A DNA stretch of 63,290 nucleotides, filler included, from Ministeria vibrans ATCC 50519 (GCA_943704425.1; 5 parts of 5 records of this genome joined end to end with filler, not necessarily neighbours in it), one strand, 5' to 3'; counted from the whole stretch's first letter, positions 3,973 to 23,500 are shown. The notes: generated by a model not told the origin, from the letters alone. Program-made: numbers and translations.

Positions 3973-4327
3973 TTAGATGTAAGCTGCAAGCAAGGCATTA
4001 CCATACACTGCATAGCACAATGCAGTGGCATCAGGGAGACGGATAAGGAGAGTACATAGAGGCGTGCTGAGGCCGAGGGGAGAGAATGGCTTGGTTCGTT
4101 TTCGTTGCTGTTGCGAGATATGGCTTCTATCGCACCCCCGAGTCTTTACAGGCACATAGTCACCCTCAGATACAAAGCAGCACCCCATTATATGGCCGTA
4201 GAAGCCATATTTGGTCCGCAAATCGTCCCTGTACGCAATCTCAAAACCAAAAACGATTTGGACGGAATTTGGATCGGATGAACACGGCGATGAGACAGCG
4301 AAACATTCGACAACCTGCGTGTGGCTA
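3973..4327 (-). CDS. Possible exon of an unknown protein, running into assembly gap
   Basis: Open frame VQIVFGFEIAYRDDLRTKYGFYGHIMGCCFV with protein-like composition; no recognised motif. Confidence 0.25.
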
Positions 4328-5136
4328 NNNNNNNNNNNNNNNNNNNNNNNNNNNNNNNNNNNNNNNNNNNNNNNNNNNNNNNNNNNNNNNNNNNNNNNNN
4401 NNNNNNNNNNNNNNNNNNNNNNNNNNNNNNNNNNNNNNNNNNNNNNNNNNNNNNNNNNNNNNNNNNNNNNNNNNNNNNNNNNNNNNNNNNNNNNNNNNNN
4501 NNNNNNNNNNNNNNNNNNNNNNNNNNNNNNNNNNNNNNNNNNNNNNNNNNNNNNNNNNNNNNNNNNNNNNNNNNNNNNNNNNNNNNNNNNNNNNNNNNNN
4601 NNNNNNNNNNNNNNNNNNNNNNNNNNNNNNNNNNNNNNNNNNNNNNNNNNNNNNNNNNNNNNNNNNNNNNNNNNNNNNNNNNNNNNNNNNNNNNNNNNNN
4701 NNNNNNNNNNNNNNNNNNNNNNNNNNNNNNNNNNNNNNNNNNNNNNNNNNNNNNNNNNNNNNNNNNNNNNNNNNNNNNNNNNNNNNNNNNNNNNNNNNNN
4801 NNNNNNNNNNNNNNNNNNNNNNNNNNNNNNNNNNNNNNNNNNNNNNNNNNNNNNNNNNNNNNNNNNNNNNNNNNNNNNNNNNNNCACTGTCGATCGCATT
4901 GGCGTCTCAGCTACATCCTCTCGGTGTTTTCTAGGCTTCAGACTACACAATACACAAAACTGCATTCGTCTCGTCTAGGCGCTTTTTTACTTGCATCCAT
5001 AACTGAATAGAAATATATATTGCAATGCTCCTGACCACACACACACGACTCACACTAACCGACAACAGAAAACGACGTAACTTAAGTCGTTCTTCGAACT
5101 TGTTTCAAAATCTCTGCAGGAGAAGCGGTTTATGAA

Positions 5137-7330: not shown

Positions 7331-7404
<74 letters not shown>

Positions 7405-8011
7405 NNNNNNNNNNNNNNNNNNNNNNNNNNNNNNNNNNNNNNNNNNNNNNNNNNNNNNNNNNNNNNNNNNNNNNNNNNNNNNNNNNNNNNNNNNNNNNNN
7501 NNNNNNNNNNNNNNNNNNNNNNNNNNNNNNNNNNNNNAAAAAAAAAAAAAAAAAAAAAAAAAGACATGTCAGATTCAGCGTAGAGCCGAGTTCGAGTCCA
7601 ACGTTCGGTCGTACCTCTTGCATGAGCAGGTCGACCTTGTCCTCGGGCACAGTCAGTGTCGTCGTTGCCGACATCGACGACTCCATGTACTGCGTCTGCA
7701 CATCCAGATTCTCAAACTGCTTCTCAAACTTGTCCATCGTCAGCGAGATCTGTCATAATATCAATGAATGTTAGGCCAAAACTTGTTCCCTTGTTTGTTG
7801 CACCTGTTCCAAATTCATCGCGCTTGCAGCCTGGTCCATCGCCTTGACTACACCTGCCATGTCCTTGGTGACCTTTTTCATACGCACGGCAGTCTCAACA
7901 CGGGCAGCAACAGCGTCAACGCGCGATGCCATCCGCAAGAAGTTCAGAGACTGAAACAGAAGAACATTATTTGAGGGTTGCAAGAGATACGAAGCATCCT
8001 CGTCACAACAC

Positions 8012-12353: not shown

Positions 12354-15300
12354 ATGGAAGCTCAGACGACTGCCGAGGATACGTGGGCTCTGATCGAAAG
12401 CGGCATTGGGGAGGTACGCACTAAACCCATTTGACGGTCGAACTATCGCTTTCCATCGGGTGTCTCACGCCACGCCCTGCTCCCTCCGCGTAGGTGTTTG
12501 GCTTTGACGACACCCGCTCCTCCGAGGTGCTCTCCACTGAGAAGTACATGGAGTACTATACGTAAGACGAGGAAAAAAAAAACGGGACGAAACATCAAAA
12601 AAAAGGAGACAGAGAAAGACGCTTCGCACGCCTGTACCGCGGTTGCCACGCCCCCGCCGTCAGCGCAAGGCGCAACCCAAGTGCTGCACCTTGCTGTGTT
12701 TCACGCGCAGACGGCCGTGGACCGATGTCTTGCGCTGTCTTGGCAAAGCGACACGGCACTCTGGTCGACACACCATCCTTCTCCCTTTCCTCTCATGCGC
12801 TCCTCGTCCTTCCCCCCGCCTCCCCCCCGCCTCACCATCTCCTCTTCCCCCTTCTTTTTTGCTTTTCTCATTGTTTGCTGCTCAACCCGGTCGCGCTTGT
12901 GGAGCGCGTCAAAAACGCAGAAATGTGTCTTCTTCTTCTCCTTTTCTCCTCCCCTGCACCTCTTCGGACCTCCCATTGCCGTATCCTCCCACCTGATGTC
13001 CCCCCAGCCTTTGTCCCGTGTGTTTGTGTGTGTCGTGCACCGTCGCATTCCGACGTGTCCGCCATACCTCGTAAAAACACTTCCTTCTGACAACTCGCCT
13101 CTTTCGATCCTTTTCAATCTTTTTTCGCTGCTCCCTTTTGCGTGACCCCCGACCATGTCACCATCCTTCCACGCCATATATCCTCTCAGGCATCGATGTT
13201 TTGACGGCACAATTTACCCTGTCACAAATGTGCTTTTGCTCTAAACCTGCAAACCCTGTAGCGCTGTCCACAATTACTGTATGGGTTCGAACACGAACCA
13301 AACCCAGGTGGTAGTTGGGCCTCGAGCTCACACGTCGGGTGCCAAATACATTGGTCGTGATGTGTACGAGCGCCTTTCGCGCTTCATCGAGACCTACCTC
13401 ACCGACATCTCTCAGGCAAGTTTCTCCCACAACTGCAACTGCGTCGAAGCAAACACTAATAAATTTATTGTTTTGTTTTCATTCCTTCTCCCTCCCCTCT
13501 CTCTATTTCTCTTTACAGAGTGAACTGACCGGTCACACGGGCCTGGCCTTACTCGAACGCGTCAAATACCAATGGAGTCGATTTACATTTTCAGGACGTG
13601 TTGTTAACAATATATGTGGCTACCTCAACCGTCACTGGATCAGTCGCGAGCTTCAGGAGGGTCACGATAACGTCCACAAGATTTACGCGGTATTACATTA
13701 AACCGTTCCGTGCGGGGGGGGGTTTTTTTTTTGTTTTTGTACATCCCGGCTCACATTTTATTACCCTATCCACACTCCCTCTTCCTCTGTGTAGATGGAG
13801 CTGATCAAGTGGAAAGAGATTGTTTTTGTGGACCTGAGCATGCAGTGTGCATCGGCGTTGCTTGAAGAAATAGAGAAGGACCGCAACGGAGAGAGTACGA
13901 CATTGTTACTCTTTCGTGCGTCAGTCATATTAATAACATGCTCTCCTGATTCTGCACAGGTACTGATAGCAACCTACTTCGGTTGGTTATTGAGACATTC
14001 CTTGCATTGGGTTCGCCCGATTCGGCTTTGAACGACCCCGCGCATGTTGGTGACGAAGACGAGATGAACGCCTACTACCGCGTAAACCAGACACACGCTA
14101 ATCATTGTGTTTCTCACGATTCACACTTCCTTTGTCGATAGGAACACTTTGAGGGCCGTTTCATTGACATGACGCGCAGCTACTATTATCGAGAGAGTGA
14201 ACAGTTTCTTGAAGAGAACCCTGTCACAGAGTATGTGAAAAAGGTACCATTTTTGTTTTTGTTTTTTTTTTTTTTTTTTTTTTTTTTGGGGGGGGTGTTC
14301 TGTATGTTCTGTATGGTCGTCTTTCTTCTATGATGCTTTTTTTCAACCCCGCATGTTAGGTCAACCAGCGAATTGAGGAGGAGGAGAAGCGCTTGCAACT
14401 GTACATTCCCAAGACCACAAGTGTGAAGCTGATGTCGACGCTGGACGACGTCCTAATCACAGCGCACCTGCACCGCTTTCAAGGCGAGCTCAAAAAGCTG
14501 CTCGACCACGACCGCACCGACGATCTCCGTTTTTTGTACAATCTGCTAGTGCGTCTGCCCAACGGTGTTGATGCACTCCGTGATGCCTTTGAAGAGCACG
14601 TCAAGGCGTGCGGTCTGCGCGACATTGCCGAAGTGGCCAACACGGCGTTCACCGACCCGAAATTGTACGTCGAAAAGATCCTGCACGTCTACAATAAGTA
14701 CGACGACTTTGTGAGCAACGCCTTCCGCAACTCGCACCTGTTCAAGCAGGCCCTTGACAAGGCCTGCCGTGCCTTTATCAACGCCAACGCTGTCACTGAG
14801 AAGGCAGGCTCGAGCAGCAACAAGGGCCCCGAACTCATCGCTCGCTATTGCGATCAGCTTCTCAAAAAGACTGCGCGCGCCGTCGAAACTGAGCTTGAAA
14901 CGGTTCTCTTCCAAATCATGATTGTCTTCAACTACATCGATGACAAGGATGTCTTCCAAAAATTCTACTCTAAACTCCTCTCAAAGCGGTAAAATTCGAA
15001 CGAAAAGAAAAGAAAAAAATTATGAAGTGTATTCATTCCCAACGTTGCATTTTTAGTCTGATTGCTGGTGTGTCTGCGTCCGAAGATGCCGAAGAGTTAA
15101 TGATTAGCAAACTCAAACAGGTATCACCCCACCAAAAAAATTATCATTTTTATCTTTCTTATTATTATTTTCTTAGGCGTGTGGTATTGACTATACAGCA
15201 AAGCTGCACCGCATGTTCAACGACATGGGACTGTCGCGTGACATCAACAGCGAATTTCACTCCAAGATGGACGGTCGCATCAACATCGACTTTAGCATTC

Positions 15301-15789
15301 TCGTCCTTACCACGAGCGCCTGGCCACCCACCAAGGCCCAGTTTAAGTCGTACCTCGTGCCCGAGGAGCTCTCCTTTGCTATTGCCAAGGTAGTCTTTGT
15401 GTATGCCCTTGTGTATTCTCAACAACTTCACGTGTGTAGTTTACCGAGTACTACCAAGTCAAGTTCAACGGTCGTGTTCTCTCCTGGGTGTACCACATGT
15501 CCAAAGGCGAGCTCAAGACGGGCTTTACCAAGCCGCAGACGTACACTCTCCAGGTGTCCACCTACCAGATTGCCATTCTCCTTCTCTTCAACCGCCAGGA
15601 TACCATACACTCCAAGGAAATCTCCCAGGATACCGGCATTCCCGAGCCGCATCTCAAGGTTCACTTGTTCATTTTATTTGCGCGTCTGTCTCATCGTCCC
15701 CTGTAGAACATCATGGAAATCCTCGTCAAGTCGTCTCTCCTCAAGGACGCCGGTGACGGCAACTACTCAATCAACCGTTCCTACAAGAG
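12354..15789 (+). CDS. CUL1: Cullin-1; 3' end lost in gap
   Basis: YMEYYTAVHNYC, YLNRHWI, KGPELIARYCDQLLKK, FNYIDDKDVFQKFYSKLLSKRL, MISKLKQACG, GRVLSWVYHMSKGEL. One GC-AG intron at ~13416. Confidence 0.95.
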
Positions 15790-16000
15790 GTTTGTCATAC
15801 TACCAGCTACAATCAGGAGTAAACTGTTCGATTTGTATACTCTAACATTGTCGTTTTTGTTTTTTTTTTTTNNNNNNNNNNNNNNNNNNNNNNNNNNNNN
15901 NNNNNNNNNNNNNNNNNNNNNNNNNNNNNNNNNNNNNNNNNNNNNNNNNNNNNNNNNNNNNNNNNNNNNNNNNNNNNNNNNNNNNNNNNNNNNNNNNNNN

Positions 16001-16107
<107 letters not shown>

Positions 16108-16226
16108 TAACAAAAATGGGTTGTATTCTTCTTCTTCTAATAATAATAGTGAGAATAATAATATGTAAGAAAATACACAAAATTCAATGACAAGTTCAAA
16201 ACTTTACTGCGTCTCTTTGCACGTAC

Positions 16227-16670
16227 CTTTCCTACATACTCGATTGGAACCCACACTTCGTACGAACCGCACGGATGAGGGCCGGTCGGCACATGGTTGA
16301 TTGGCGGGATGCTGCTGGTGTTGAGGCCGGGCAGCATGTCGTCGCTGACGCCGTCGAGGACCGCCACAAGCTCATGGCGGCGCACCATGTCCAGCAGCTC
16401 GTCGCGGATGCGCATTGCCGCCACATACGAATCGTTTTCGTCGGGGATTTCCAGCCCTGGAAGATGCCAGTACACATGGAAGTGCCACTCCTTGATGGCG
16501 GGGTCGGGCCAGGCCACGTCGGCCGCAAAGTCGATGGGGTTCACTTGCGCGTGTGTCGTCACGAAGCGCGAACCCCCATGGATCGGATCCATCTGTGAAG
16601 GGGGCGGTAGAACTTCTTGTCCAAAGCCAAGCGCACAGTGGGTAGCTATAACGAGTACCAAAGGGAGCAT
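16227..16670 (-). CDS. Secreted DOPA 4,5-dioxygenase-family protein; first exon, remainder in gap
   Basis: Signal peptide MLPLVLVIATHCALG; IKEWHFHVYW and INHVPTGPHPCGSYEVWVP motifs typical of the DOPA_dioxygen family; exon ends VGK|gtacgt. Confidence 0.8.
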
Positions 16671-16752: not shown

Positions 16753-19142
16753 ATGCGCATCTTCGTCTTTGCCGCCGTGCTCGTCGGGTGTGTGTCGCTG
16801 GGGTCGGCTGGCGACTGTGGCCTGTTTGGGCAGGCGTGCTGCAACAATGGAAAGGCGCTCGTGTGCAGCAAGCACCAAGGCGCCTGTCTTGTCTTCGACG
16901 GCAACATTGACGGCGTCTGCTCCGCCTTTGGCGGCGTCTTTGTCAAGAACTCCACTGCATGTGTGCAGCCAAATTACTTTGCTGACCCTCAGGTGAGACG
17001 GCTCCTCTGCCACGCAGCCAGACAATACCCCAACATCAATACTAAAAAACGAACGGGTTTTGCTTGGAGGTCCGCACTCACCTCACCTGCGACTGTGCAC
17101 CCGGGTTCGCCACTGTGTGTGCTCCTACTGACGATGGGCTGTCGCTGTGCACGTGCACCTCGACCAACCTCGTCTCAGACTCGCTCTACGGCGGCATGTA
17201 CGCCCTCGACGCCCTCACGCACCAGTGCGCCACCGTCAACCCGATTACCCTCCAGTGCGCCTGTCCGTCGTGGACCACCCCTGCCAAGCCCATTCCAACG
17301 CAACATTCAACTATTGTCATCTGCTCCGCCGATAAATTCGCCATGCCCGCTCCCTCTTACGGCGGTAGGGTGTGCATGCAGCAACCCCAAAGACACCCCC
17401 TTAACGTTCTGCTTTCTTTTTTATATATACTTCTTAGGATTTTGGACATCATCAAACACATCGGCCTGTCTCTCGCCCAACCCACTGACAGGCACGTGTG
17501 GCTGTCCGGCAGATCCGACAGACTCAGGCTTGACCTTCTGTCCCTTTTCGTACCCGTTGGCTCATTCGTCGGCGAGCGACACACTGACTGTGTGCCACAC
17601 ACGACAGGCGTACGGTGGTCTGGAAGTGCTGATGAGCGCACCAGGCGTTGAAAGCATTGTTGTGGGGGAGGTGCGTGCGGTGGTGGGTGTGCCTGCCGTG
17701 CAGCACTTTGACCTGGGCGGTTTCCACGGTGTCTACGACCACATTCACTTTGACGTGGATGACGTGCACCTTGCGTCACTCTCCCTTGGCGACGACGTCT
17801 CCTTCACCTTTGCCGACGACGAGTTTACCTTTGAGATTGACGGCGGATCCACTCTGGTCAAGGCGGACCATGTCGAGGGCTCCTTCATCGGTCTTAAGGC
17901 ATACTGTGACGCGGACATCACTGTCACAAAGGTACAGTGCGATACTCTCGTGATACGACACTCTCTCTTGCTTACTTCCTTATTTACCCATTCGCCCATC
18001 TACCCGATTAGGTGAAGGTTGTGCTTGCGGTGAACGCGTCGCTGCTGACGCCCGGGGGTCGTCTGTATCCTGTTGTGTCGTTGCGTCAGTTGGTCTTTGA
18101 ATTGGGGCACATCAAAGTGCGCATTTCGGGAGGGAATCTGCCCGACGACAAGATTGACATTGTGATTGCATTTCTTGAGTGGCTGCTGCCCAATCTGTTT
18201 CGCGCCAACCTCGCGCCTGTCCTTGCGCCCATCATCCAGCAGCAGCTACAGAAGCTGACAGGACTGGCGGCACTTCAGCTGTCGCCTTTCTTCAACTTCA
18301 CGCTGGGCCCGTACGCCTTTGCCTTTGACGCCTCCCTTGTTGGCTGCGAGATTGCCATTGCCAGTGCAGGTCTAGCCGCGCGTGTCCAGGGCGTACCGTA
18401 TCTGCTGGCTCCGCCTGCCCCCGCCTACGAGTACCGCCCGGCCCCGGCTTCGCGCGTGCCCCTGCCCCACCGCATCCCCGGCATGGCGGGTGCCGTCCTC
18501 TCCCCGGCCCTCCTCGAGGCCCTTGCACTCACCCTCTTTCAAGTGGGCGCCGGCAATTTCAACATCAGCCAGTACACCACAAAGGATAACCGCACCGTTG
18601 GTCTCATGGTCCGCGATCTTGCCCTCTTCATCCCCGAGGCCGCGCGCATGTATCCCGCCGCCCCCATGTTGCTCGCCATCCAGACGAGCCCTTCCGCTCC
18701 GTACGCCATTGCCCCTGTGTTTGACATTGACGCCACTGGTACGCTCTAATCTCTTGCAATTATATGGACTAACTCACAGAATGGCGCAGGCATCAACCTC
18801 AACATGACCATTGGGCTGTCTCTGTACGCACTGACCAACGACACGTCGCACGGCAACGCCAGTCAGTGCGTCTCGTCCACTCCCGCTCCCAATCAGCCCC
18901 TGTCCAAGTTTACTTGCAACATGCTCCTCTTCTCTCTTGCCGTCTACACTACCATTGAGCCTGTCTTTGCCAACGACACTACATCGTAACAAATCACGAA
19001 ATCACGACGACTTCTTTCTATTTGCTTATGTGACTGATACACCTATCTCTCTCTCTATCACTTTGTCTCTCTCTTTCACTTTGTTTCTTTTTCGCTTTAT
19101 TTGTTCTTTTTCCCTCTCTCTCTTCTCTCTCTCTCTATCACT

Positions 19143-19182
<40 letters not shown>

Positions 19183-19599
19183 CTCTTTGTTCTCCTTCCT
19201 TTTTGTCTCTCTCTCTTTCTGTCTCTCTCTCTCTTTCTGTCTCTCTCTCAGATGGACTGCGACCATCCATTTTGACCTGGCTGAGTTGGAATTGGCCCTC
19301 GAGCAGTCCCTTGTGGGTCCTGTCGACGAGCGCATTGTCGCAGGGCTCAACATGCTCATCAATGGATTTCTTGAGATCATTTCGGCCAATCTCAATCGTG
19401 CACTCGATCGCATTGCCCTCCACATTCCAAAAGACACCACATGTAACGTCCCTTTTCACACTCACTGACTTGCGCCCCTATCTACACACTAACTTTTCGA
19501 TCCTTTTTTGTAGTCCTCACGATTACCAATATGCAGTCTGAGACAGGCAATGAGTATGTGTCCGTCGCGCTGGACTACATCTTCCACCCGCAGTTGTAG
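16753..19599 (+). CDS. Secreted Cys-rich (FGG..NP.TG.C.CP repeats) + BPI/LBP-like lipid-binding protein, paralogue A
   Basis: Signal peptide MRIFVFAAVLVGCVSLGSA; repeats FGGVF..PNYF, YGGMY..VNPITLQCACP, YGGFW..PNPLTGTCGCP; then GLEVLMSAPGVESI, FIPEAARMYP, SLVGPV as in BPI/LBP/CETP; about 7 exons ending IFHPQL*. Confidence 0.75.
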
Positions 19600-19631
19600 C
19601 TTCTTTCTTTCCATCACTTTGTTTCCCTTTC

Positions 19632-19683
<52 letters not shown>

Positions 19684-19778
19684 CTCTTTGTTCTCCTTCC
19701 TTTTTGTCTCTCTCTCTTTCTGTCTCTCTCTCTCTTTCTGTCTCTCTCTCAGATGGACTGCGACCATCCATTTTGACC
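19149..19778 (+). repeat. ~130-bp direct duplication (19149-19276 and ~19640-19778) of a CT-rich intron end plus exon start
   Basis: ctacctctttgttctccttcctttttgtctc...ctctcagatggactgcgaccatccattttgacc occurs twice. Confidence 0.9.
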
Positions 19779-19798
19779 AATATTAAAGAAAATAACTA

Positions 19799-22191
19799 TT
19801 AAACTACTACATCGAGATTGAGGAGAATGGTAAAGAAGTGTTGGGCAGGCACAAATGGCACTGGCGGAAGGGAAAAGCTCAGATGGAAAGCAGTGGGCTG
19901 GGCAATTTGCAAAGGATGCGCCGCAGAAAGCGTGTTGATGGCAGGCGCAAAAAGAAGCAGAATGCCATCAAAGAACCGGTCAAATCCAGCGAGAGGGCCC
20001 ACATTCGTACTCTGTTGTGCGTGTGTGGGTGAGACAAACTCTCTTTCTATCTCTCTCTACTCTTTCTACTGTCTTATCTTACGATAGTCTTGCCAGTCAC
20101 ATCGGCAAACAGAAGGTTGATGGAGAAGCTCACGTGCTTGTCATCAGCCGAGACAATCGGGAAGACGTCAGCATGGAAGACGAGGGTGCTGGTAAAAAGG
20201 GTGCACGAGCAACGTTGAGCAGTCGCGTCGTACACGCATGTGGGGTCGGTGCGGCACGACGGCGCGTGTGTGAGCGCAACCATGGTGACCACAAAAGCAA
20301 AAGAGACGGTCACGCCAACCGGGCTGGTTGTAAATTCGGGCGCGTGTGTCATGGTGAGCTCAGGCGTGCACTGGAAGAGTACATCGACGGTCGCATTGGG
20401 AAACTTTTGAGGAATCTCATTACTGATGCCGGCCACAAGCAGACTGTGCGTTGAGAGGGAACAGTTGACGCCAAGCAGATGGCACAGTGTCGTGAGGTGT
20501 CCGTTGATATGGTCGTCGGCGTAGAGCACGTCGAAGAGTGAGTTGATCATGCTATCACTGATGGTCACGCCAAAGTCCTCAATGGCGGGCTCACGCGGAA
20601 GCGGCGCATACGGATAGATGGGCTCACGCAGACCTCCACCCGTCGCAGAGTGGTTGGCAAAGAAGAGTGCTCGCAAGGGCAGAATCACGCCGGAGTGTTC
20701 AAGCGGAATCTGTTCGCCGGCCGCAGAAAGATCCAACTCTAAGTCGCCCACAAGTGCAAGGTGCATCGGAGGTGCATCAAGCACACCTGACGCACCAATG
20801 GCCGCCACTGCATCTACAAGCACGTCCGAAAGCAGAGTCGACAGCACCTTGCCATTGCACAGATCTTCCAAGGCCTTCGAGACGGCCTCCTCGACGGCGA
20901 CCGTCAGCACCGGCTTGTCCCACAGCGACGCGTTAAAGTGCGTCTTGACATGCCCCACTTGCACCACAATGCCCCCCACGTCGCCGGTCCCAATCTGTAG
21001 ATCCACCCGCCCACCTACCACAGGCGCATCCAGCGTCACCCGCGCCGCCAGCGAGAAGTCGCTCAGCGTAATGGTGACCGTACGGCTCACATCGCCCAGA
21101 ATAGACTTAACAGACACAGCTGCACTCGCACTAAGAGAAGCACCACGCATCCCGACCGTCCATACGTTTCCCTCTGAAACAACCTCAATCTTGCCGGCCT
21201 GCGCAATGGCCGGTCGCAGCTCTGACAGCGAAAACGTGACCTGGAAGAAACAGAACAGAAAAAATAAAATGGTATATACGAGGGTGGATGGGTTAGAGTA
21301 TAGCGTCCTGTTGTTATTGTCCTCTCGCTTTGAGTTTATCGGTACTTTGAACCCAAAGACGTCGACGGTGTCGCTGATGGTGGGGAAAGTGGTGTTTTGC
21401 AGGAGAACGCCGAGCACGCTGAAGAGCCCCTGACCAATGGCCTCCATGCCGTTCTGGTTGATGGACACGCCGAGGTAGGCGGCTTCAGGCGACACCAGAC
21501 AGAGAGTGACGTCGCGGTTGCCGGTGCGAAACGAACGGCGCGAAACTTTCATGTCGGTTGCAGTGAGGTTGAGCGAGGGACAGTCGCATGTGCTGTTGGC
21601 CACGAGCGGGTTCCCGCTTGAGCATGACGACACTCCCGGGTTGCGGCTGAACCCGCCGGCGTACACGGCAAGCGCGTCGGTTGGGAAGTGTGCGCCGACG
21701 GGCAGGAGAGGGACGCAAAAGACGACAAAGGTCGCGTTGCCGTGGCTGTCGAGCAGGCCCGGCAGGTAGGTCGACGGGCCGTAGCCCTCGGGGCAGCTGC
21801 AGCCGCCAGTGTAGTCATTGGGCGAGCATGCCTCGCCGGCAGCCGTGCTTTGGTACACTCCGCCAAAGGCAGCGCCGGCGGCAAAGTGAGCGGCGGCGCA
21901 CACGCAGAAGCGCTGCTTGTCGACGAGCGAGAAGCAGCGCTCCTGGTAGCCCCGCGTGCACTCGCAGCGCGGATGCTTCCACGTGGGGCTGGAGTAGTAG
22001 TTGGGCAGGGAGCAGGCGCCGGCGCCGTCAAAGATGTAGAAGCCGCCAAAGGACGAACAGACGCCGTTGACGTTGCTGTCGAACACCAGACAGGTGGGAC
22101 ACGCCGCATCGCATTCCTGTCGTCCAGGTCCTCCGGAGCGCGCCAGGGCGGGGTACGCCAGCACGACGAGCGTCAACAGGATGAGTTGCAT
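19799..22191 (-). CDS. Secreted Cys-rich + BPI/LBP-like lipid-binding protein, paralogue B
   Basis: Signal peptide; CLVFDSNVNGVCSSFGGFY (paralogue A: CLVFDGNIDGVCSAFGGVF); FGGVYQ..NDYTGGCSCPEGY; LGVSINQNGMEAI, ISDSMINSLF, IPQKFPN, STNVG (BPI-like). Last exon 20011-19799. Confidence 0.8.
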
Positions 22192-22322: not shown

Positions 22323-23500
22323 ATGAAGCTACAGCTGTTGATTGCGTTTGTTGCGGCGGCGGCGGCGGCGGCAGTGGCGGCAATGACGGCGCCACTGGTG
22401 GTCAGCATTGATGTTGACCAGGAGACGGTCAGCTTTGTCCACAACGACCAACTGATCGAGCTGCTGGCGTCGGAGCGGCTCAGCGTCCTTGCCCATGTCT
22501 TTGGAGAGCGCTTTTCTCTCATTGACCCGCGAGGGATGTCGCATATTAGCGTCAACTCGACGCTGGCAGCCGCATTGCGGACGGGACGCATTCTCGCTGT
22601 GGGTGGCGCCCAACTGGAGCTTGTGATCAAGAACCCCGCCGTCACAAGCCGTCCTGTGGTAGCTCCGGCCGATGCATGCTCTTGCGCCACCGGTCGTGCC
22701 ACTATCTCGTCGACGGCAAGCGTAGTCTCGGCGACTCTCGCCCTGCAGGACATTTCGGGCGAGACATGGAGCATTGTTGCGTCAAACGGCACGATGAACA
22801 CCGCACGGGTTGGCACGGGTGTGCGCAGCTCACTTGGTGCGGATGGTACACTCTGGGTGAATGGCAGCGTTGTTTCGACAGAATCAGTGACGGGCGCACA
22901 ACTCAATGTTGCCGGTGACGGCACCGTCCAAGGAAAACTGACCATTGGTGGAGGTCTGACGACCACGGGCGATGTGTCGCTGACTGGTGGCAATCTCAAT
23001 GCGCAGACCGTGTCGGTGGGCGACGCAACAGTGTCACACGACCTCATTGTGACGGGCAAGACGACAGTGGGTGCCGTAGACATCCAGTCAGGCAGTGCAA
23101 CGACACTCACCGCACACACACTCGCAGCAACCACCGCAACGACCGACACACTCGCAGCAACCACCTCAGTCACAGCGCCCTCGGTCTGTGCCGGTACTCG
23201 CTGCCTCGACACACTCTCCTTTGCATCATCGACCTACCAAGTGGATGGTGGCACTGCCAAAGTGCACAATCTGGGTCCTCATCTCTTCTGCGCTCTCTCG
23301 GCCGTCCACCCACACGGCTGGACGAGCTTTGACATTGTACACAAAGATAGAAGGAGGGAGGGTGGGCGATGGAGAGAAGACTCACGCTCGAATTTTTGAA
23401 TTGTCTCTTGTAGGAACTGACCATTGTCAATGGCAATTGGACTGTCACCACCTCTGCTCCTCAGAGTGACTCGGCAATTATGTGTTTTGACTTCAAATAG
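22323..23500 (+). CDS. Secreted fibre/adhesin-like protein with beta-repeat stalk and Cys-containing tip domain
   Basis: Signal peptide; V/T/G-rich short repeats (LNVAGDGTVQGKLTIGGGLTTTGDVSL); VCAGTRCLD; HNLGPHLFCALSAV; intron 23337-23413 gives ELTIVNGNWTV..AIMCFDFK*. Confidence 0.75.

Follow-up and report, generated by a model that had tools for sequence, protein, structure and literature searches.

Two convergent genes in the Ministeria vibrans window

A 63,290-nucleotide (nt) stretch of DNA from Ministeria vibrans ATCC 50519 (GCA_943704425.1), filler included and hereafter referred to as the window, was read on both strands. It represents contig C220 of a 29.7-Mb assembly of 2860 contigs and consists of eukaryotic DNA with short GT..AG introns. 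Two convergent, intron-bearing paralogues were found in it, gene A on the plus strand (16753-19599) and gene B on the minus strand (22191-19799), each predicted to encode a protein with an N-terminal Cys-rich domain resembling the P2 domain of MPEG1/perforin-2 and a long C-terminal part resembling the BPI/LBP family, a combination that we refer to as P2-BPI. Positions 16753 and 22191, between which the original prediction had placed a domain fusion of this kind, are the start codons of the two converging genes.

Gene A, with a predicted product of about 743 amino acids (aa), runs from an ATG at 16753 to a TAG stop at 19597-19599 and was read from the sequence as seven exons (16753-16992, 17070-17364, 17438-17931, 18012-18738, 18790-18985, 19252-19442 and 19514-19599). 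Gene B, with a predicted product of about 742 aa, runs from an ATG at 22191 to a TAA stop at 19801-19799 and was read in the same way as three exons (22191-21346, 21240-20083 and 20011-19802). The eight introns are all of the GT..AG type and span 51-266 nt; the six of gene A and the two of gene B lie at differing positions, in agreement with the claim that the intron positions of the paralogues had diverged. Intron 1 of gene B (21345-21241) is 105 nt long, in frame and free of stop codons, and the genomic open reading frame (ORF) 22191-20077 reads through it. Retention of this intron would lengthen the protein by 35 residues close to where the BPI part begins, and intron-blind gene callers read through it. 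Gene A was analysed exon by exon, and gene B as the genomic ORF 22191-20077 (705 aa) together with exon 3 as a separate piece.

Both predicted proteins start with a hydrophobic leader, recognised by eye as a putative signal peptide (aa 1-20 at 16753-16812 in gene A; aa 1-21 at 22129-22191 in gene B, where the structural model has a helix over residues 2-17), and many NxS/T sites were seen by eye in both sequences. Both proteins are probably secreted. No hydrophobic transmembrane anchor was seen in the last exons of gene A or gene B, and both proteins end in the TULIP C-lobe.

A rare family with diverged paralogues

A phmmer search with the 705-aa ORF against 1.84 billion representative proteins returned three proteins only, P0001, P0002 and P0003. 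P0001 is the same gene recovered from an ENA metagenome, on a contig that shares 98.7% identity with 1051 nt of the window (19917-20967). P0002 is a 691-aa protein in the EukProt transcriptome of Cavostelium apophysatum (Amoebozoa, Variosea), the nearest relative found, and P0003 is a fragment of a homologous gene on L006, an intron-bearing Logan contig (SRR33270664) of 4262 nt and 67% GC. P0002 and L006 share the order of parts, with three repeats followed by a long C-terminal region. In the L006 gene, frame changes resembling short introns were noted, and a protein kinase gene adjoins it on the opposite strand. A word-indexed protein search gave no match with the gene B ORF and returned P0002 alone when P0002 was the query, and no relative emerged when JGI metagenome contigs were scanned twice with patterns of the family. 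As known so far, the family is rare in current data, with three organisms, one of which is amoebozoan. With an amoebozoan as the nearest relative found, a holozoan framing of the family gains no support.

BLAST comparison of gene A with gene B gave nothing in the BPI region, and pairwise BLAST of the terminal exons of both genes, mutually or against the canonical BPI of the genome, gave no significant match. The two paralogues are linked by L006, which matches gene A exon 4 with an E value of 1e-10 and gene B exon 2 with E values of 1e-7 to 1e-12. P0002 matched the gene A domain exons in tblastn (E values of 2e-10 and 4e-8), and gene A exon 4 was aligned with the gene B/L006 profile by hhalign (78%, E value of 1.8e-5) over 166 collinear columns. 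Homology between the two BPI parts is therefore detectable only via profiles, as expected from the claim that these parts had diverged, and the identity between the copies in the TULIP part is about 20-25%. Genes A and B are thus old paralogues in inverted orientation, both belonging to a single rare protein family.

Exons 1-4 of gene A are backed by homology to P0002 and L006, and exon 3 of gene B by L006:2606-2899 (E value of 2.9e-6). No significant homology was obtained for gene A exons 5-7, the basis of which is the open frame and the splice sites alone. A 144-nt stretch at 19134-19277, made up of the CT-rich tail of intron 5 in gene A plus the opening 26 nt of exon 6, recurs with 97% identity on the plus strand at 19635-19778, about 500 nt downstream, past the gene A stop and within the 200-nt gap between both stop codons, and is either a local-duplication remnant or an assembly duplication. 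Exons 5-7 and the duplicated piece of gene A would both fit a reading of the loci as pseudogenes in decay or as mis-modelled parts of other sequences. We regard this as highly improbable, since both genes have retained long open frames with canonical splice sites and encode products of matching size (about 740 aa), since the order of parts is preserved in homologues from two other organisms, of which the Cavostelium one is a transcript, and since a 98.7% identical copy was found in an independent metagenome.

The N-terminal domain matches the P2 domain of MPEG1/perforin-2

The Cys-rich domain of gene A lies at 16885-17601, is split by introns 1 and 2 and was delimited by motif scan, tblastn and a profile, A7, built from the N-terminal domain alignment of gene B, the gene A exons and L006. 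In gene B the corresponding minus-strand region is made up of repeat 1 (aa 34-101, 21889-22092; motif scan and conserved block), repeat 2 (aa 102-164, 21700-21888; motif scan and profile alignment), which carries FGGVYQ and CSCPEGY, and repeat 3 (aa 165-236, 21484-21699; motif scan and model), which closes in a predicted long Arg/Lys-rich beta-hairpin (aa 214-235). A regular expression, [FY][GA]G..C..N..C.C[PT], detected three copies of the repeat motif in gene B exon 1 (aa 48-79, 109-134 and 177-205), three in gene A (over exons 1/2, 2 and 2/3) and three each in P0002 and L006, whereas, among 20,000 shuffled versions of the gene B domain, only 12 had at least one motif. The original prediction of about three Cys repeats per gene thus holds for both, and the strings that it quoted, FGGVYQ, NDYTGGCSCPEGY and YAGGF...SGNPL, all occur in gene B. 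Each repeat spans 60-70 aa and consists of [FY][GA]G, followed by C..N..C.C[PT].G[YF] and a closing hydrophobic-x-hydrophobic-C strand. Directly before repeat 1, the block C.V.D..[IV][ND]G[VL]CS[AS][FY]GG, whose conservation between the paralogues had been pointed out from the sequence, is shared by genes A and B and the environmental homologue L006.

MABP domains have been described as threefold type-I beta-prisms of three repeats, in each of which the second strand bears a PxGY signature (PMC2881412), and P2 is a divergent MABP beta-prism, of which a hairpin binds anionic phospholipids and lipopolysaccharide (LPS) (PMC6753088, PMC7593815). PxGY-type signatures were found in repeats 1 (CTRGY) and 2 (CPEGY) of gene B, not in its repeat 3, in repeat 1 only of gene A (CAPGF) and in repeat 2 of P0002 (PAGF).

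Profile A7 was searched against 177,635 PDB sequences and gave five matches up to an E value of 10, all of which are MPEG1/perforin-2 chains: 6u23 (E value of 5e-4), 6u2j (2.5e-3), the isolated P2 domain 6sb1 (3.8e-3), and 6sb3 and 8a1d (0.048 each). No EGF or other Cys-rich protein was among the PDB matches up to this E value. In the alignments with MPEG1, the elements FGG[VLF][YF], NP[LM]T and SCP.GY are in register repeat by repeat.

A structural model was folded from the genomic 705-aa ORF of gene B, including the read-through intron 1 and without exon 3. In a Foldseek search with this model, the perforin-2 P2 crystal structures rank straight after the BPI family (E values of 1-2e-2, probability 0.93-0.97). 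When the Foldseek matches were superposed with VIA-align, the top six were all perforin-2/MPEG-1, with Z-scores of 8.1-6.2, root mean square deviations (rmsd) of 2.9-3.8 Å over 109-120 residues and 22-25% identity, and the first unrelated chain had a Z-score of 5.3. The best of these were 8a1d (Z-score of 8.1, rmsd of 3.4 Å over 117 residues) and 6sb1 (Z-score of 7.8, rmsd of 3.1 Å over 120 of 196 residues, 23% identity). In this match, model residues 46-236 are paired with residues 376-580 of the chain, so that the domain is covered in full in both structures. A blind VIA search of 48,161 representative chains, independent of Foldseek, also placed the murine perforin-2 P2 domain (6sb1_A) first, with a Z-score of 7.6 over 119 residues at 23% identity, the next chain having a Z-score of 5.3; across both structure searches, 6sb1 superposed with an rmsd of 3.1-3.6 Å over 119-120 of 196 residues. 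The likeness to P2 put forward in the original prediction is therefore recovered by a profile that matches only MPEG1 in the PDB and by structure searches in which P2 comes first, and the superposition on P2 proposed there as a check gave a Z-score of 7.6-7.8 on 6sb1 for a gene B ORF model with a mean predicted local distance difference test (pLDDT) of 43.

The C-terminal part is BPI/LBP/CETP-like

The BPI/LBP-like part of gene A extends over 17602-19596, contains introns 3-6 and was delimited by the L006 match, hhalign and the family profile; that of gene B extends from aa 237 to the end (19802-21483, minus strand), contains introns 1 and 2 and was delimited by Foldseek and by profile search against the PDB. 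Both are putative double TULIP modules. Profile A6, a family profile including the gene A exons, was searched against all PDB sequences and matched human BPI with E values of 6.4e-9 and 7e-9 and LBP with 1e-5, the next match being at 0.055. Foldseek of the gene B model gave BPI (1ewf, E value of 3.3e-6, and 1bp1), CETP (2obd) and LBP (4m4d) in ranks 1-5, with E values of 3e-6 to 8e-4; the alignments with BPI (456 aa) are 429-436 columns long, at a TM-score of about 0.1, an rmsd of 27 Å and a model pLDDT there mostly below 50. In Pfam, P0002 scored above the cut-off for PF02886 (LBP_BPI_CETP_C; 26.3 bits against 23), gene B exon 2 (E value of 0.027, 14.3 bits against 23) and P0001 (E value of 0.005) remained sub-threshold, gene A had no PF02886 match and PF01273, the N-lobe model, matched nothing. 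Atlas language-model features of gene B placed it among BPI-like clusters throughout the top ranks, with a score of 0.89.

These results, together with the alignment of the family with the canonical BPI of the same genome by hhalign (80.5% probability, E value of 1.3e-5, 218 columns), bear out the BPI-like region predicted to follow the repeats, and the C-terminal part is, by sequence comparison, BPI/LBP/CETP-like. Its length and secondary-structure order fit two TULIP barrels (about 450 aa), and a two-barrel geometry is deduced for this part of about 480-500 aa from its homology and length. The description of the fusion as one of two animal innate-immunity modules stands for the P2 half and not for the BPI half, as BPI/CETP homologues span all eukaryotes (PMC5507252). 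The TULIP exons are acidic, with a net charge of -20 and an isoelectric point of 4.8 for gene B exon 2 and a net charge of -15 for the TULIP part of gene A exon 3.

The canonical BPI/LBP-like gene of this genome lies on another contig (G000:C313:291832-292554, equivalent to L009 ORF 1456-2727, minus strand) and matches PF02886 with E values of 1e-23 to 1.6e-24. The organism thus holds a plain BPI in addition to two P2-BPI fusions.

Absence of MACPF and search of the genome

No MACPF domain (PF01823) was found by Pfam in any exon of gene A or gene B, and the sole MACPF match of the genome lies on another contig, in accordance with the claim that neither gene has this domain. That match is in an unbroken 1394-aa ORF (L013:1229-5413, minus strand, on G000:C1760) with an EGF-like start, MACPF (PF01823, 32.9 bits) and C-terminal Kelch repeats, and the MACPF-Kelch pairing is unusual. 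An MPEG1-like gene with MACPF and P2 elsewhere in the genome was considered and rejected, since this lone MACPF gene is without P2 repeats and profile A7 matches nothing else.

In its own genome, A7 matched only genes A and B, apart from a 100-nt stretch of contig C1696. This stretch (G000:C1696:19042-19152; L005:1043-1150) was rejected as a third paralogue, because 100 nt are identical at the DNA level to gene B 22085-21986, and its flanks, a (CT)n run and an N gap of about 2.4 kb, point to an assembly artefact, such as a chimeric join or a misplaced read.

Flanking sequences

Head to head with gene B, with the start codons about 130 nt apart, lies a 358-aa ORF (22323-23399, plus strand) with a hydrophobic Ala-rich leader, Thr/Gly/Val-rich repeats and no Pfam match; given this arrangement, the two may share a promoter region. 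Upstream of gene A, a 177-aa ORF (16137-16670, minus strand) has a sub-threshold match to Dopa 4,5-dioxygenase (20.9 against 25 bits), and a multi-exon cullin gene occupies 13300-15800 on the plus strand (PF00888, E value of 3e-55 on one exon). N gaps at about 4300-4900, 7400-7540 and 15870-16000 are bordered by long microsatellites, (CA)n, (ATT)n and poly-A among them, and the contig is a scaffold in which repeats are unresolved.

Proposed function of the P2-BPI proteins

The combination of a hydrophobic leader, a P2 prism and a double-TULIP BPI-type module, with neither MACPF nor an anchor, is probably that of a membrane-targeted, non-pore-forming effector. By analogy with the known relatives of its parts, the protein would enter the secretory or phagosomal pathway, the P2 prism would dock it onto lipid membranes, as MPEG1 P2 binds anionic lipids and LPS, and the TULIP barrels would then bind or extract lipid from the docked membrane. 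The product would be a membrane-attacking or lipid-stripping effector of a bacterivorous protist that forms no pore, in which targeting, the task of the cationic N-lobe in human BPI, would fall to P2. The acidity of both proteins and their want of a cationic N-lobe fit such a division of labour, with P2 as the targeting part. Since the two copies are far diverged, with about 20-25% identity in the TULIP part, they probably act on different targets or lipids.

Several observations weigh against this reading. Both AlphaFold models are poor, with a mean pLDDT of 43 for the gene B ORF and of 38.6 for the N-terminal domain alone (folded from a six-row alignment without P0002 and discarded), and in the gene B model values of 60-80 are reached only in the core strands of the prism, so that the fold matches depend on local 3Di/sequence signal and these better-predicted strands. 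The Z-scores of 7.6-8.1 are to be seen against the grading of the tool, in which values below 8 are middling, and the TM-scores of the model to BPI are about 0.1. Single-sequence phmmer searches against the PDB gave no match, and Pfam gave nothing above threshold on any exon; likewise, gene B residues 30-240 had no match in the word-indexed protein search, and the N-terminal part had none by Atlas language-model features. The Arg/Lys-rich hairpin predicted in repeat 3 of gene B (aa 214-235, pLDDT about 62-70) is absent as a conserved feature from gene A and P0002, and, judging from aligned repeat lengths, the long hairpin of MPEG1 would fall in repeat 1. As it is not conserved in the relatives, this hairpin carries no weight in the reading. 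Finally, both proteins are acidic whereas human BPI is cationic, which makes a BPI-style electrostatic attack on LPS unlikely.

Some of these points would equally suit an N-terminal region that is a generic Cys-rich module, EGF-like or other, with a P2 likeness due to a chance match of short motifs: the region is blank in single-sequence PDB, Pfam, Atlas and word searches, and the model is of low confidence with structural Z-scores below 8.5. Such a chance likeness is nevertheless improbable, because A7 matches MPEG1 alone in the PDB and no EGF or Cys-rich protein up to an E value of 10, because the Foldseek-independent search puts P2 first of 48,161 chains, 2.3 Z units ahead of the next, and because three repeats are present in both structures, the match covers the full domain and the identity at aligned positions is 22-25%. 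Sequence profile and model together thus argue, with moderate strength, that the N-terminal region of about 200 aa is homologous to the P2 domain of MPEG1/perforin-2.

The main functional rival accepts the same architecture and assigns it to a digestive or housekeeping lipid carrier, recycling or scavenging lipids in the food vacuole or shuttling them extracellularly, rather than to an antimicrobial protein. Acidity fits this role equally, as the proteins are closer in this respect to CETP/LBP-type carriers than to bactericidal BPI; TULIP proteins generally carry lipids (PMC5507252), and a lipid transfer protein of TULIP type is reported from the digestive vacuole of Plasmodium. On the other hand, this P2 subtype is otherwise known only from an antimicrobial pore-former, and the P2-BPI proteins have neither an enzymatic partner nor a membrane anchor. 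We consider a carrier role possible, though less likely than that of a membrane-targeted effector.

Novelty and implications

No description of a P2-BPI fusion was found in the literature, in agreement with the original prediction, the author of which knew of none, and surveys of TULIP and MABP proteins name no such pairing (PMC5507252, PMC2881412). Since no Pfam model matches the P2 region, an InterPro architecture view would show such proteins only as BPI-C. P2-BPI is a new domain architecture built from known parts. P2, so far treated as part of an animal-specific immune protein, appears here outside animals, detached from MACPF and joined to the other classical lipid- and LPS-recognising fold of innate immunity. 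The fusion amounts to a natural experiment on P2 without a pore and opens to direct test the idea that P2 is a portable module for membrane targeting; it also gives the BPI family, described as almost always stand-alone, a second architecture with an accessory domain, and points to a possible new class of effectors of bacterivorous protists against the membranes of their prey. A tentative evolutionary scenario, which we hold to be conceivable rather than probable, is that the P2 prism predates animals and served first as a MACPF-free, membrane-targeting head of BPI-type lipid-binding effectors secreted by amoeboid protists, MPEG1 being a later shuffle of this head onto a pore-former and P2-BPI a separate, membrane-attacking phagosomal class without pore formation.

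Comparison with known systems

With the canonical BPI of the genome, the P2-BPI proteins have the TULIP C-lobe in common. Unlike them, the 423-aa ORF of this gene, the N-terminus of which is undelimited, contains no FGG/Cys repeats, and it is a distant relative and no recent source of the fused genes. Compared with BPI, LBP and CETP at large (1ewf, 4m4d and 2obd), the P2-BPI proteins have a collinear C-terminal part of about 480-500 aa, look secreted and have the size of two barrels, but add an N-terminal P2 prism of 200 aa, are acidic and are so divergent as to fall below the Pfam threshold. BPI/CETP proteins have been described as secreted proteins of 350-500 aa in all eukaryotes, the sole accessory domain named being a C-terminal PqiA in a few protists (PMC5507252). 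Among phagotrophic amoebae, BpiC of Dictyostelium discoideum is a BPI-family protein studied among the phagosomal effectors against bacteria; in the parts of the two reports consulted, no P2-like domain is reported for it (PMC8545105, PMC10107278), and its setting, to which it is likened here by description, is the one proposed for the P2-BPI proteins.

A MABP prism acting as a membrane-association module on a membrane-active or lipid-handling partner is also known from Plu-MACPF (Photorhabdus plu1415, 2QP2), MVB12, DENND4/Crag and the VPS13 inserts (PMC2881412). In these architectures, however, the partners are UMA, DENN, VPS13, MACPF and others, and BPI is not listed among them (PMC2881412). 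No Plu-MACPF, MVB12, DENND4 or VPS13 chain is among the top 50 matches listed in the fold searches, which suggests that the domain described here is of the MPEG1 subtype.

With MPEG1/perforin-2 itself (6sb1, 6sb4, 6u23 and 8a1d), the P2-BPI proteins share three repeats with FGG[VF][YF], NP.T, CP.G[YF] and C in this order in each, and an extracellular or luminal, disulfide-rich setting. They differ in being without MACPF, the EGF-like linker, the L-domain/CTT, the transmembrane helix and the cytosolic tail. P2 is placed N-terminally in the P2-BPI proteins but after MACPF in MPEG1, and the host is here a protist, whereas MPEG1 has been described as metazoan (PMC7593815).

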